Source: Pavona decussata
Lineage: Eukaryota
Assembly: GCA_977016875.1 (NCBI GenBank)
Contig: CDRNST010000122.1
Coordinates: 992,001-1,056,000, forward strand
Length of the DNA stretch: 64,000 nt
Reading direction: 5' to 3'
Below, one piece after another: positions 1,647-64,000 of the stretch (position 1 is the first letter of the stretch; each line of letters starts with the position of its first letter). The position numbers were made by a program, and so were the translations under genes. Below the pieces are notes generated by a model, which saw nothing but the letters and a program-made list of their open reading frames with translations, was not told the DNA's origin and searched no databases.

Positions 1647-4001
1647 TTATGTACATTCCACTGTCAAATTGTCCATTTTTATTGGCACGTAGCACAAAAT
1701 TGCATTTGTTTCAATTGTTCCCAAATTTTCCCACTCATCCAAACTAACAGGATACACCTCCCCCGGTGGGATTCTAATGCCACTGTCAACTGGGAAACTG
1801 TTAGTGATGAAATAAACCCTCCCCTCTACTTCTACAGCTCCAAGGTTGTTTGGTGGAATGTGCGTTTGTTGTACAACAGACCAAGTGTTGTTTTGTTCGT
1901 CATACACTTCAACTGAAGCTATTGTGCCACAAGGTTTACCATAAGAGCAATCGATAAAACGTTTTCCCCCAGCAACACACAGTTTATTGTTTACTTCAAA
2001 AAGGCTGGACCCAAAGTGGTTTTCAGTTGTTGATGCCCTTTGTTCCCACTCATTTCTCTTTGGGTCAAAACGATGCAGAACAGCAACGTTTGGTTGCCAG
2101 TTGGACTGAAAAGAGCCAAACTGTCCATTATTTACTCCTTGTCCATAAAGAACATATACACAAGATCTAAATACTACAGCTGCTTTGTTACAAAATGTGT
2201 TTGGACGCATGTTACATTCAGCACTCGAACTAGTTATATATTGCCACCGATTTGTAGATACACTATACCTGTTTGGTGCCATTGATTGACGTATTGATTG
2301 GTGCCATTGATTGATTATCCCACGTGTTACTAACAACATGATAACGATAGACGATACAGTCACCGGCCTTTTCGGCTGCTACATACAAGTAATTACCAAC
2401 AAGTTCCGCACAAAAACATGCTGTTGCGTCGGTCAGTTGTGCAAGTGATGGCAACGGCTTCCATGATTTAGACTGGACATCAAAGTACTGCATCTGAGTC
2501 TGTGGAAGAATGGCAACAAGTACCTGAAACAAAGTTAGAAACAAAAGTGAGTGAGAATGATGGCAACCCAAAATATTTACTCAAATGTATCGATATTATC
2601 AGTCGTGATATAATACAGGTTTAGTTTAGTTTAATGCATTCGCCACAACAACTACATTGACAATAAGAGATGATAACAAAATAAAACATATTAACTAGCA
2701 AATATATCAAAAGTAAGTGGCCAGGGATGGGGGGCAGGAGAAAAAAACAGAACTTTCGTCCCAATTGTGACCTCACTCCCTCAAGGTAATTAAGGTACAG
2801 TGAAGATAATCTACAAATTACAGACAGTAGAAGGGTACACAATAAACAATTAAACGGAGGACTGTAGGTTTCTTGTTTAGACAGATAAAATTGGAGAAGA
2901 CCAGCTTTAAATTTGTTTTAATTAGATTATAATTATTGGGGTTATATTTCCGTCTTCGATAACATGGCTCCAAGGTGTGCAGGAATTTTCTTATGTCAGT
3001 AGATATAAGGCCGTTTCTGGACTTGAAAAGGAACAATAGATCTGAAATGTTATATATAAGGCGCCAAATTCAAAGGAATTTCTTTCTGTGCAAATGTAGG
3101 TCTACTGTTTTCACAAAAACAAAACTGTCGAAAAGGAGATATTCATATGGCAATATCATCCAGTATAAGACCTGGATCTCTTACCGGGTTTGTTGACCTT
3201 GGTTTAGCTTTCTCTGCAGCGAACTTAGAAATCTCTGACGGCATACAAGTATGCAACAGTGATTCATGAAGCAGCATGAAAATCTCTGGTACTTGTTTCA
3301 TCTCCTCTGTGTTCAGTTCTTCGATCACATCTCTGATGTCCACCAGTCCCAGGCGAACCGCTCCGATCACTTTGGCCCCCACAGCTATTCTCTCTTCCTT
3401 CTTGTGTTTGATCCACTGCATCACTGATTTGAAGACGAAGGTCTCTGAAGGAGCATTGAGGTCATCTCGACTGAGAAGGTTCAGCAACTGATCTGCGTTA
3501 ATATGCGACAAGAATGCTTCAGTTTCACAGATGTCCTTGTATATCGAGGCCATCTTGCGGTGTGTGGCTTCTTGAAGGTCCGTCAGACCGTGTCGATCAG
3601 ACGCGACAGTACGTTTGCACATCAAACCGAAGCTGAACATACTCAGTGTTCAAATAATCACAACACTGTTGAACAACACTTGTGACTTGAAGATGATCTG
3701 CCGCAAGGAGAACTTCAAACACGTTTTCATCGTTGACATGAACCTCTCCACTGTAGATGGAATCCATGACGATCTTCAAAGCAGCTGCTGAAACGTTTTC
3801 ATCTTTGAGTTCAATCACTTCCTGGTTGGATTCCTTCATTTCGTGAGTAAACATGGCGTGGAAATAATCGCTATTCGCAGCGAGCACAATGCGATGAGCT
3901 GGAAAAACGTCTTCACCCACCTTCAAACGAACATCAATGAATTCACCTTGTTCACGAAACTGATTACACTTGGACAAAAGAATCTCAGAATGATCGACCA
4001 T
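1647..4001 (-). pseudogene. KLHL-like BTB-BACK-Kelch gene copy 1, disrupted (exon 1 4001-3185, exon 2 2523-1647)
   Basis: BTB motif ([29 protein letters not shown]), BACK and Kelch motifs. Donor CCG|GTAAGA at 3185/3184, acceptor TTTCAG|GTA at 2524/2523. An 11-bp deletion relative to copy 2 near 3598 shifts exon 1, and a deletion with templated insertion at about 2275-2320 shifts exon 2. Confidence 0.85.
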
Positions 4002-6303
4002 GTTTGATTATGGTTGGAAGATGGGAATGTTTTCACTCTGAACGACGGGAAATTGTGGCGACAGTAATCTTTGCGTGATCGCGTGACCTAATATTCAAAC
4101 ACAGGCTATTGTGTCACGGAAGCTGACGTGATTTTTTTAGGACGGTCTGACCTCAGCCCGGGTTCCTAGAAAGTGCGACACCGGAAACTTTCTAGAACTA
4201 AAATCTTCCAACAATTAATAAGTTTTTAAGTGAAACTCACCTAAAGACTTTTGCAGGACTGCAATTTCATTCCGTTTGAGATACTTTATTTTCACCTTTT
4301 GTCAAAGAAGGAATGTTTTGTATACTGCCCAGTGCGAAACATGTATAAGCCAAAAACTGAGAGAAGATAGGTTGGTTTGATGAGCGCTAAAATCTCAATG
4401 TCTGCTGGTGATTAGTCCCTCCCCTCCCTTCTTATCCCTAGCTGTATCCATTTCTGTTACTCGACTCACTATCCTTACCAAACCTGTAGCTCGCCACGCT
4501 CACCAGAAAAAGAGGGAAGTGTTTAAAATTTGTTTCCATCCTTTACATAGTTCTATGCTATGAACATCAGGTAACCGATTTTCTTTTGTTCCCTTAAAAT
4601 TTTACTGATGTAGGTCTATAAAAGATCCGGCATGTTTCATCGGTTGATCGCTGTGTGCCTTATCTCGGCTTTTAAACTCCCTGAAGCCATTGTGTCGTAG
4701 GGGCAATAAGGAGACTATCGCCTAGTAGGCTATATTATTTATTAGGCAAATTGAATCCCGGCCTTGACTGCATCATGACTACGATAGAAAATAAAAAAGT
4801 TAGGATTATTTTTGGAGACAGGAAAACAATACACACAGACTTTTGTCGGAGGTTTAAGGATTTTTATTTAAATTTTATTACATTTCATAAAGCAATTGAT
4901 AAAATTACATGATTGTTGATTAAAGATTTATATCAATAGTTACAAACTGGTCTCTACTTAGGAGTCGCGTCAGTTTCCCTTTCTAAAATAACAATGTTAA
5001 CTAAAGTGTTGCTATGAGGCCGGCAATGTGTCAAGCACAGTTATTCCGCGTTCTTTAACTCGGCTAAAATATCCAGCCCTGCTATAAACTGCTCTATAAG
5101 GCGATATATTTGCCATTCTAAAAAGAACTTCAGTAATTGAGTAAAAGCGCTAGTCAAAAGTATCTCTACACAAAAAGGGCCGGCTAGTTTTAAAAGATTG
5201 ATCGACAAAAAAACTTTTAAAATTAGTGTAAAAAACAGACATACGCTAACACTTAAAAAAAATCTACTGTCCTAATACTTATTTTGCTAGTTATCTGTTA
5301 TCCTAATTAACATTTTTGTGAGTTATGTACACCTATCTAAACCCCTTACCATCAACCTCTGTCTTTATTTAAACTCTCTACTGAATCGTTATATTTCGGC
5401 AGCGTTTGACAATCGCTTTTACCGTTCAGTTTCCAATCATTATGAACCTTACAGAAACAAAAAGGCGACAGCAACGAGACGCTCTGCAAAACAACCTTCA
5501 AGTGGCCAAATTGAAAGGCCGCACGACGGAGACTTTCATACTTCTGTTTGTGAACTTGAACGCGTTGCATCTAATTATGTTCCTAGATTGTTTGGGCACA
5601 TTATACAAGTTGAACAGGTTGCAATAATCTAGCTGCGTGTTGCGTGAAGATTCCTAGATAATAGATAGATCCGACAAAGGCTAAAATCGTTCCCACGCGC
5701 TTGAATTTTAGTGTCCTGTTCATTTTCTGATTCCGTCCGTACTTTCTGAGACTCCAGAACAGTACTAGTGTTGATTAATCACAAAGTAGATCAGATATAA
5801 CGTGAATATACCGAAAACGGAAGAGCGGCAGTCGATTGAATTACGCCAACTTGTGAAGCTTTAAAAACAAAAACGGATAACAGCGACAACATAATGCAAT
5901 TCTGTCATGAATTTTTTTCTTGAATTGAGTTTGTAAAAGATCGCCGAAATTGAACAATCAACTGTGGTCATCGTAGCATGGCCAGTAACAACCTGCCGCC
6001 GTAAAACTAGTTTCCCCAAACCTGATGACTTTAAACGGAGAACTAAGACAACTAACTTCAAAATTGTGCACGGTAGTACGTGAATACTTTTAAATACACT
6101 CATCCGATTTGTTACACATGTTTATAAGAATCACAATTTTTGGCCACCAGCAGCGGTTATTGGAATCCTTTTGTGTTGGCGATTTTTGTTGGAACTTATT
6201 TAATTCAGGAGAACATGAAACTGCAGGTATAGAGTTGGAATTTAAAAAATGCAACACCACTATACCTATATAGCAAACATAGGAAACTTTATTATTATTA
6301 ATC

Positions 6304-63033: not shown

Positions 63034-63489
63034 AAAAAGCAAAAATCGATAACAGCGAAAACATAATGCAATTTTGTCATAAATTTTTTCTTGAATTGAG
63101 TTTGTAAAAGATCGCAGGAAATTGAAAAATCAATTGAGGTCATCGCGGGCTAGTAACAACATGCCGCCGTAAAACCAGTTTCCCCAAACCTGATGACTTA
63201 AACGGAGAGCTAAGACATTTAACTTCAAAACTGGGCACAGTAATACGTGACAACTTTTAAATTCACTCATCCGATTGGTTCACTGGAACTCATGTTTATA
63301 AGATTCACAATTTTTGGCCACAAGCAGCGTTCGTTGGACCCGTTTTGTATTGGCGATTTTCGTTTGAACTTATTTAATGAAGGAAAACATGAAACCTGCG
63401 AGTATAGAGTTGGAAGTAAAAAAAAATGCAACACCCCTTACCTATGCACGGGTTTTCTTAAAATATAGCAAACTGAATTGTTATTAATC

Positions 63490-64000
63490 CTACTCTTTTT
63501 TCAAGTTCTCCCTCTTTACCGGAACATAACTCAGGGCAGCATTTGTGGGAATGTTACTATTAACATTTTTCCATTTATCCAAAGAAACAGGATACAGCTC
63601 CCCTGGTGGGATCCTAATGCCACTGTCAACTGGAAATCTGTTAATTATGAAATAAATCTTCCCCTCTATTTCCACTGCACCGAGGTTGTTTGCTGGAATA
63701 TGTTTTTGATCAACAACAGACCACTTGTTGTTTTCTTCATCATAAACTTCTACTGATGCAAATTTACCAGATGGCCTACCGTAATCTAAATCATAACGAA
63801 CATTACCCCCTACAACATGCAGTCTACCATTAACTGAAAAAAGGCTGGACCGAAAGTGGGGCTGGCAGGTTGATGCTTTTTCTACCCACAAATTCCTTGC
63901 AGGATCAAAACAATGTAGCACCGCACTGCTTTGGACGCCAGAAGAGGATACCCTACCATAAAGCACAAACACCTTTGAATGAAGTACTGTTGCCCCACTA
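63490..64000 (-). CDS. KLHL-like copy 9, 3' part of Kelch exon (continues beyond window; copy 2-like)
   Basis: Open frame nearly identical to the copy 2 C-terminus (SAVLHCFDP...VEVYDEENNKWSVVDQKHIPANNLGAVEIEG). Confidence 0.85.
   Translation of the reverse strand, partial: SGATVLHSKVFVLYGRVSSSGVQSSAVLHCFDPARNLWVEKASTCQPHFRSSLFSVNGRLHVVGGNVRYDLDYGRPSGKFASVEVYDEENNKWSVVDQKHIPANNLGAVEIEGKIYFIINRFPVDSGIRIPPGELYPVSLDKWKNVNSNIPTNAALSYVPVKRENLKKE

Follow-up and report, generated by a model that had tools for sequence, protein, structure and literature searches.

A pseudogene-rich stretch of a coral KLHL-type gene array, probably a CUL3 adaptor repertoire with a diversifying substrate face

Why should neighbouring genes remain easily alignable through their introns, spacers and strand cores, and yet differ strongly in the sequence and length of a few short loops? 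This question is raised by a 64,000-nucleotide stretch of Pavona decussata (contig CDRNST010000122.1, positions 992,001 to 1,056,000; hereafter the window, in which all coordinates are counted), which a previous reading of the letters without database searches (the sequence-only reading) had described as a birth-and-death array of KLHL-type CUL3 adaptors with hypervariable substrate-binding loops. The follow-up analysis described herein shows the window to be a pseudogene-rich part of a KLHL-type array and makes it probable that the array encodes a CUL3 adaptor repertoire with a diversifying substrate face. Such a repertoire of CUL3 substrate adaptors would share one ligase-docking scaffold, and each adaptor would differ in the surface that chooses the protein for ubiquitination. 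Units arise by local tandem duplication and are lost through nonsense mutations, frameshifts, deletions and transposon insertions, and the B-C loops and some D-A loops on the putative substrate face change in sequence and length faster than the introns and flanks.

Units of the array and the variable face of the propeller

Self-comparison resolved the window into a tandem array of units, and in combination with Pfam searches it placed nine two-exon BTB-BACK-Kelch units (U1-U9) and one solo Kelch fragment on the minus strand, the number of units being that given by the sequence-only reading. Their positions are as follows.

1647-4001, minus strand: U1, pseudogene of the C subfamily; exon 1 at 4001-3185, Kelch exon at 2523-1647
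6304-9191, minus strand: U2, intact gene of the C subfamily; exon 1 at 9191-8367 (275 amino acids), intron at 8366-7192, Kelch exon at 7191-6307 plus stop codon
15390-19191, minus strand: U3, pseudogene of the A subfamily; exon 1 at 19191-18373, Kelch exon from 16443 to about 15393
22205-29905, minus strand: U4, pseudogene of the A subfamily; exon 1 at 29905-28982, Kelch exon split into 27654-27304 and 22935-22211
33526-33795, minus strand: solo Kelch C-terminal fragment (blades 5-6), B-subfamily-like, without a BTB exon
35984-39409, minus strand: U5, pseudogene of the A subfamily; exon 1 at 39409-38588, Kelch exon at 37084-35987
41796-44289, minus strand: U6, pseudogene of the B subfamily; exon 1 at 44289-43470, open Kelch exon at 42803-41799 (335 amino acids)
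48006-50448, minus strand: U7, intact gene of the B subfamily, used as the reference model; exon 1 at 50448-49627 (274 amino acids), intron at 49626-48951, Kelch exon at 48950-48009 (314 amino acids) plus stop codon
54100-56065, minus strand: U8, pseudogene of the B subfamily; open exon 1 at 56065-55244, Kelch exon from 54576 to about 54178
63490-64000, minus strand: U9, 3' part of a Kelch exon of the C subfamily, cut by the window end; its 169 visible codons are open

Pfam assigned the upstream exon to BTB plus BACK and the downstream exon to Kelch repeats, both exons of each gene having been searched and folded separately and not as one spliced protein. The BTB family (PF00651) matched the exon-1 open reading frames (ORFs) of U2, U4, U7 and U8 with E = 5e-23 to 2e-29, BACK (PF07707) followed the BTB match with E values of about 1e-20 to 1e-21, and the Kelch exons matched Kelch_1, Kelch_6 and propeller families. 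The exon pair is split by a single phase-0 intron, whose donor (CCG/GTAAGA) and acceptor (TTTCAG/[GA]TTCTTG) are canonical and kept across the units, and the product of an intact gene has about 590 residues, in which the BTB-BACK module is followed by a six-bladed Kelch propeller. The three subfamilies are arranged block-wise, in the order C C A A (fragment) A B B B C by rising window coordinate, which fits local duplication. Within subfamilies, the synonymous divergence (dS) of the Kelch core was 0.14-0.20; it reached 0.44 for A versus B and 1.3 for comparisons with C, indicating paralogues of different ages. The introns of the A subfamily (1.1-3 kb) were longer than those of the B subfamily (0.4-0.7 kb), and the GC content of the window was 38-45%. 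At the 3' end of the Kelch exons of the A and B subfamilies, about 20-25 residues form a tail rich in lysine and glutamate (e.g., 41796-41861 in U6 and 35984-36050 in U5), in which omega, the ratio of nonsynonymous divergence (dN) to dS, was about 1; in U7 and the C subfamily, the stop codon precedes this tail.

The U7 Kelch exon was modelled with AlphaFold2 from a 69-sequence alignment; the model had a mean predicted local distance difference test score (pLDDT) of 88 and comprised six four-stranded blades. Foldseek returned the KLHL3-WNK4 and KEAP1-Neh2 complexes as the best natural matches of this model, with probability 1.0 to the Kelch domains of KLHL3, KEAP1 and KLHL2. The peptide motifs quoted by the sequence-only reading were all recovered (20 of 20), once each and on the minus strand where expected. 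Strand order and the canonical Kelch motif identified the three loops that follow YVA, VLHG and YVAGG as the B-C loops of blades 2, 4 and 5, respectively. The loops of U7, with the residues flagged in the codon models described below, and their counterparts across the units are as follows.

48891-48932, minus strand: blade-1 B-C loop of U7, residues 7-20; hypervariable, 6 of 14 codons with P(omega > 1) > 0.95 under M8
48738-48758, minus strand: blade-2 B-C loop of U7 (after YVA), residues 65-71; flagged 66, 67, 68 and 70
48420-48461, minus strand: blade-4 B-C hairpin of U7 (after VLHG), residues 164-177; flagged 168 and 170-173
48264-48305, minus strand: blade-5 B-C loop of U7 (after YVAGG), residues 216-229; flagged 218, 222 and 223
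16237-16260, 27442-27471, 36833-36859, 42591-42614, 48738-48761 and 54367-54390, minus strand: loops after YVA
15907-15954, 22730-22768, 42273-42311 and 48420-48458, minus strand: loops after VLHG
48282-48299 and 36326-36394, minus strand: loops after YVAGG

The length of the blade-5 B-C loop varies between the copies, from 14 to about 35 residues. In an alignment of 19-22 open Kelch exons, further variable regions were the blade-1 B-C loop, several D-A loops and a segment ahead of the closing strand, and conservation extended over the whole of blade 6 and the D-A loops that join blades 4-5 and 5-6. The earlier equation of the variable segments with the B-C loops of a substrate face was hence borne out for the B-C loops and has to be widened, several D-A loops being variable as well. 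By topology, the B-C and D-A loops share one face of the propeller, which is the face that holds the substrate peptide in KEAP1 and KLHL3.

Selection in the loops and the candidate CUL3 adaptor role

The structural classes (core, B-C loops and D-A loops) were fixed from the model prior to any comparison of rates. Nucleotide p-distances within three unit pairs were as follows.

U7-U6: intron 0.093, exon 1 0.093, Kelch core 0.069, D-A loops 0.145, B-C loops 0.285
U7-U8: intron 0.108, exon 1 0.098, Kelch core 0.085, D-A loops 0.126, B-C loops 0.283
U5-U4: intron 0.103, exon 1 0.054, Kelch core 0.067, D-A loops 0.163, B-C loops 0.227

These values were in good agreement with the earlier statement that cores, introns and spacers remain alignable while the loops vary. 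Across loci, intron divergence (K) was 0.08-0.14, dN was 0.44-0.53 in the B-C loops and 0.03-0.07 in the core, and core dS was 0.11-0.25. Positional orthologues of the first unit from three species gave p-distances of 0.12-0.14 in the flanks, 0.075-0.095 in the core and 0.35-0.41 in the B-C loops. Equality of loop divergence and neutral intron divergence, which the sequence-only reading had named as speaking against itself, was thus not found, the B-C loops standing 2-5-fold, and on the whole about threefold, above the introns and flanks.

Codon models were applied to 22 open Kelch exons, and the main tests were performed on the 19 exons of the A and B subfamilies. We used our own GY94+F3x4 likelihood on the topology of the nucleotide tree; on a fixed tree it matched IQ-TREE under GY+F3X4, with log-likelihoods (lnL) of -9037.04 and -9037.09, respectively, and omega 0.608 in both. 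The outcomes, including those of likelihood-ratio tests (LRT) between site models, were as follows.

M0, omega by class, 19 exons of A and B: core 0.40, B-C loops 1.28, D-A loops 0.79, C-terminal tail 1.07
M1a/M2a, whole Kelch exon: LRT 161.5, 14% of codons at omega 3.8
M7/M8, whole Kelch exon: LRT 174.9, 15% of codons at omega 3.5
M8a/M8, whole Kelch exon: LRT 153.3
M1a/M2a, 12 fully intact genes: LRT 102
M1a/M2a, loops given their own rate: LRT 91
M1a/M2a, loops on the loop-only or the core-only tree: LRT about 90, both topologies agreeing

As a control, the BTB-BACK exon of the same units gave an M1a/M2a LRT of 5.0 (p = 0.08) and omega 0.36, with no class of omega > 1. The codons with high posterior in the Kelch exon numbered 26-28, of which 18-19 were in B-C loops and 8-9 in D-A loops, and none was among the 169 core codons. 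Purifying selection thus acts on the Kelch core, made up of the propeller strands with their short A-B and C-D turns, and on the BTB-BACK exon, with omega of about 0.4 in both. Diversifying selection on a subset of the loop codons is supported by these tests, if not overwhelmingly.

This conclusion has to be weighed against a view that we consider unlikely but that deserves to be set out at length, namely that no adaptive diversification took place, the loops being simply unconstrained and the class of omega > 1 being an artefact of indel-linked mutation, short conversion tracts and misalignment. The mean omega of the B-C loops, 1.28, did not differ significantly from 1 (p = 0.065 under M0 with the 19 exons), and the comparison of equal-length loops in seven independent sister pairs gave mean dN/dS values of 0.75 for the B-C loops, 0.77 for the D-A loops and 0.41 for the core; a class-mean omega above 1 was therefore not demonstrated for the loops. 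Synonymous divergence itself was elevated 1.4-3-fold in the loops relative to the core, as seen for U7 versus U6 (dS of 0.37 in the B-C loops and 0.13 in the core), and at codons with identical amino acids it was 0.228 in the B-C loops, 0.202 in the D-A loops and 0.145 in the core. A null model having three site-rate classes and no class of omega > 1 (lnL -6471.6) fitted better than plain M2a (lnL -6489.7), the rate correction reduced the LRT from 161 to 23.6, and the strictly gap-free B-C columns on their own gave no significant signal. Branch lengths had moreover been held proportional to those of the nucleotide tree, and uncertain alignment, mutation linked to indels or gene conversion over short tracts accounts for part of the raw signal. 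The copies may have exchanged some sequence, as suggested by an exon-1 dS lower than the Kelch-core dS in the same unit pairs (0.27 versus 0.44, A versus B) and by a nonsense codon common to the non-adjacent units U3 and U5. Finally, at most two of the nine units in the window can function. All these points weigh against adaptive diversification of a working repertoire.

Neutrality, however, caps divergence at the level of the introns and flanks, which the B-C loops exceed even in the positional orthologues of three species. When a class of omega > 1 was added to the site-rate null, the improvement remained significant (LRT 23.6, p = 8e-6), with about 12% of codons at omega 3.3, and five codons retained a posterior above 0.9, all of them in B-C loops (residues 12, 13, 70, 171 and 222). 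The signal also survived in loop columns that were gap-free and had gap-free neighbours (LRT 21.8, p = 2e-5, all loops), the blade-4 hairpin alone gave an LRT of 10.8, and exon 1 of the same units was without such a signal. Loop-only and core-only trees recovered the same clades and the loops retained their subfamily identity, by which large-scale swapping of loops among subfamilies was rejected. The sequence-only reading had proposed to give way if loop dN/dS was not above 1 and loop divergence equalled that of the introns, and this outcome was not obtained: a site class with omega > 1 was found and was confined to the loops, although the loop mean stayed at about 1 (0.75-1.3 depending on the method).

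Between the A and B subfamilies, synonymous divergence climbs along the gene, from 0.27 in exon 1 through 0.44 in the Kelch core to about 0.65 in the loops, and 5' conversion, 3' indel-linked mutation and counting artefacts at multiply-hit codons are possible explanations of this gradient. Because of this rise, and because indels cluster in the same loops, one might also propose that the loops are diversified by a dedicated or locally targeted mutation process rather than by selection on ordinary mutation alone. Another proposal would be that the array is a polymorphic intracellular specificity system of which each individual has a different working subset, which may serve, for example, symbiont/pathogen discrimination or allorecognition. 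We regard this pair of proposals as decidedly doubtful.

The reading that we prefer, a repertoire of CUL3 adaptors with a diversifying substrate face, further depends on the docking module. The best solved relative of U7 exon 1 was the KLHL3 BTB-BACK module in the KLHL3-Cul3 structure (PDB 4HXI; E = 4e-32, query residues 11-230), and the BTB-BACK module of A55 was also among its solved relatives. The M-K-E of U7 aligns with the M-S-E of KLHL3, which represents the CUL3-contact phi-x-E motif, the preceding A-M-F-T-G is also conserved, and the segment A-M-F-T-G-x-M-x-E, which includes this contact, is retained in the BTB-BACK exon. From these alignments we infer that the array proteins bind CUL3 and function in degradation. 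It could be objected that they are not CUL3 adaptors and that the Kelch domain serves cytoskeletal binding, as in Drosophila Kelch, or scaffolding, the loops tracking the loss or shift of such a role; some BTB-Kelch proteins do bind actin, the public annotations of the relatives are just generic "kelch-like" names, and the adaptor role is itself read from sequence comparison. We find this objection improbable, since purifying selection acts on the BTB-BACK exon (omega 0.36), the alignment extends over 220 residues of a module that was crystallised with Cul3 and keeps the contact motif, and a cytoskeletal role does not predict a diversifying binding face. A role in immunity or symbiosis with foreign proteins as targets, which the sequence-only reading had suggested, would be an analogy with the nematode and plant F-box and MATH-BTB families and is not supported here.

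Lesions, assembly and turnover of the array

Of the nine units, U2 and U7 are intact and U9 is truncated by the window end; the other six are pseudogenes, disabled by nonsense codons, frameshifts, a deletion of about 466 bp and a 4.4-kb retroelement, so that the earlier wording "mostly pseudogenised" proved apt. In U2, both exons are open, with GT-AG splice sites and Pfam matches to BTB plus BACK and to Kelch. U1 carries an 11-bp deletion near 3601 in exon 1 and deletions of 28 bp and 19 bp near 2308 and 2285, respectively, in the Kelch exon. In U3, TAA stands at 18757-18759 where GAA is found elsewhere, TGA at 16203 where TGG is found elsewhere, and 2 bp are inserted near 15634. U5 has TAA at 38972-38974, in the same codon as U3, and its open Kelch exon (366 amino acids) has the longest loops. 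This GAA-to-TAA change in the BACK region is identical in U3 and U5, and U4, which lies between them, keeps GAA; either a dead copy may have been duplicated or the lesion may have been passed on by gene conversion. In U4 itself, 102 bp of palindromic sequence are inserted in frame into the BTB exon near 29823, the 4.4-kb retroelement lies in the Kelch exon, and TGA stands at 22657. The 102-bp insertion (about 29722-29823, minus strand) is 92% self reverse-complementary over 93 bp and has the same 8-bp word on both flanks; a palindromic duplication or a small element that forms hairpins may be its origin. In U6, a 1-bp insertion (C) at 43653 shifts the BACK frame. A homopolymer sequencing error was rejected as its source, the inserted C lying outside any run, and such an error has no bearing on the nonsense codons, the deletions or the retroelement. 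U8 has TAA at 54195 and has lost blades 3-6 through the deletion of about 466 bp. The solo fragment at 33526-33795 was detected as a tblastn match to guide residues 496-583, and its frame is open throughout. The window is mainly a graveyard stretch of a larger array, the intact members of which lie elsewhere.

The assembly of the window is interrupted once.

39637-39771, no strand: assembly gap of 135 N, the only N run in the window, in the spacer upstream of U5

The gap lies 228 bp upstream of the U5 ATG (39409) and no coding exon crosses it, so it raises no question about a reading frame; the listed ORF at 39512-39895, which spans the gap, is meaningless, as it arises solely from N translated as X. 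The gap flanks align to the spacers of U4, U6, U7 and U8 in the same order and orientation, and the distance from the U5 ATG to the first shared anchor past the gap is 384 bp including the 135 Ns, in comparison with 284-640 bp in the paralogues. The join is plausible, although colinearity within a tandem array would be compatible with whole units missing there. That the array copies are assembly artefacts, such as haplotigs or collapsed or expanded repeats, is hardly credible: one scaffold gap does lie inside the array and the locus is present in two public contigs of different length, but the unit introns differ by 7-30%, the retroelement, deletions, intron lengths and lesions are all unit-specific, and comparable arrays occur in four independent long-read assemblies. 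Allelic duplicates in particular were rejected on the basis of intron p-distances of 0.09-0.23 within subfamilies and of differing lesions and insertions, and the haplotig explanation to which the sequence-only reading had conceded it might succumb was thus not borne out.

Ten outside loci (L001-L010), none of which overlaps the window, were obtained from four ENA assemblies by exact-protein look-up. They contained additional units built in the same way, in most of which both exons are open. In three of them, from three assemblies (L002, L006 and L008), the array edge adjoins one common pair of genes, MutS_I and UPF0449. Divergence of about 14% in the flanks places these three loci in different species, and their unit order, truncated units and transposon content differ. 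The array exceeds the window, is common to several species and turns over, which is birth-and-death behaviour. The earlier characterisation as KLHL-type genes in a birth-and-death tandem array was in this way substantiated by the domain order, the paralogues of mixed age, the pseudogenes and the differing content of the loci. A search for relatives gave 780 matches at E <= 0.001, and among the matches listed (the best 120) all those with a named organism were from stony corals. The best named relatives were "kelch-like protein 23" of Stylophora pistillata and hypothetical proteins of Oculina patagonica and Desmophyllum pertusum, at 44-60% identity, which agrees with an anthozoan host, most likely a stony coral, and the remaining close relatives were ORFs from ENA long-read assemblies.

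Mobile elements and other features were noted along the arrays.

22915-27326, plus strand: retroelement interrupting the U4 Kelch exon, with RVT_1, RNase H and a weak Phage_integrase (tyrosine recombinase) match, E = 0.09
17526-17867, plus strand: ORF with a GIY-YIG nuclease domain in the U3 intron (25.7 bits, above the Pfam cut-off)
59446-59518, plus strand: tRNA-Ala(GGC) gene in a spacer (58.8 bits)
46443-46515 and 32370-32441: decayed tRNA copies (37 and 30 bits, respectively) at the equivalent position in homologous spacers
10805-10862 and 50692-50747: spacer microsatellites (AAT)19 and (ATT)18, respectively, perfect or near-perfect

In the U4 retroelement, the direct repeats are split and follow one another as A1 ... 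B1-A2-B2, with 22915-23047 identical to 27049-27181 (100%) and 26936-27063 matching 27199-27326 (96%); this layout looks like that of a DIRS/Ngaro-type element, and the insertion is recent. No second copy was found in the window or in the ten outside loci. The GIY-YIG ORF may be the remnant of a Penelope-like element, and the tRNA gene, or tRNA-derived head of a short interspersed nuclear element, was copied along with the units. In the outside loci, Bro-N, HNH_3 and weak Endonuclease_7 ORFs directly upstream of a BTB-Kelch unit (L007, 1-5340) look like a virus-derived or mobile insert. BEL/Pao-type retrotransposons between units and a reverse-transcriptase ORF in a first-unit intron were observed at L002 13953-18365, L003 13984-20274 and L006 8275-9942; transposons are frequent in these arrays.

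Comparison with known systems

An expansion of this kind has been catalogued in corals. The orthogroup OG0000062 ("kelch, BTB/POZ") has 486 genes in 11 corals versus 5 in 3 sea anemones, and 69-79% of its members in Porites and Pocillopora are tandem duplicates (Noel et al., Genome Biol 24:123, 2023; Additional file 2 of PMC10236652). By labels and domains, it is like the genes of the window, having BTB, BACK and Kelch and the same kind of NCBI names ("kelch-like protein"). The table places it under "signal transduction", BTB and Kelch are both absent from the main text, and we found no pseudogene, loop or selection analysis of the orthogroup in that paper (PMC10236652). Nor did our literature search find a published loop or selection analysis of coral BTB-Kelch genes, so that, as far as we found, the expansion is already described and the behaviour of the loops is apparently new.

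Among vertebrate proteins, KLHL3, KLHL2 and KEAP1 (PDB 4HXI, 4CH9, 2XN4 and 2FLU) resemble the array in the domain order, the six-bladed Kelch propeller and the CUL3-contact motif, and differ in being conserved products of single-copy, multi-exon genes, every one of them with a single defined class of substrate; the identity of the U7 Kelch domain to theirs is about 15-18%. The poxvirus BTB-Kelch proteins (vaccinia A55, PDB 6I2M; PMC11656787) are likewise multi-copy and fast-changing, and engage the CUL3 of the host, but they are viral hijackers, and no relatedness to the array is evident beyond the shared domains.

A closer parallel in the manner of evolution is offered by other families of ligase components. 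TRIM5alpha-type factors have E3-linked B30.2 loops that vary in sequence and length under positive selection, and they form tandem clusters with pseudogenes; they differ from the array in fold and ligase type, and their antiviral role is proven. Adaptively evolving F-box and MATH-BTB adaptors of nematodes and plants were reportedly described by Thomas in Genome Research in 2006. Like the coral array, these families have undergone large lineage-specific tandem expansions and contain numerous pseudogenes; their cullin-docking domain is conserved, and positive selection falls mainly on the domain that binds the substrate (see also PMC4091423; PMC8120010). The array differs from them in using a Kelch propeller with variable loops instead of MATH or FBA/FTH domains and in its cnidarian host, and an immune role is equally unproven on both sides.

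The interest of the comparison lies in the biology of the host and in what the array makes available. To our knowledge, stony corals have no adaptive immunity and must sort symbionts from pathogens within their own cells. The expanded receptor families of corals discussed so far are mostly surface or NLR-type sensors. Testable objects are provided by the two intact genes of the window, by about twenty more in loci related to it and by the few loop codons singled out above; if the signal were mutational or conversional, the array would instead be a clean case of indel-rich loops inflating codon-model tests. If the preferred reading is true, a tandem family of ubiquitin-ligase adaptors would supplement those sensors with a layer of another kind, in which recognition is coupled directly to degradation, as has been proposed for the F-box and MATH-BTB families.

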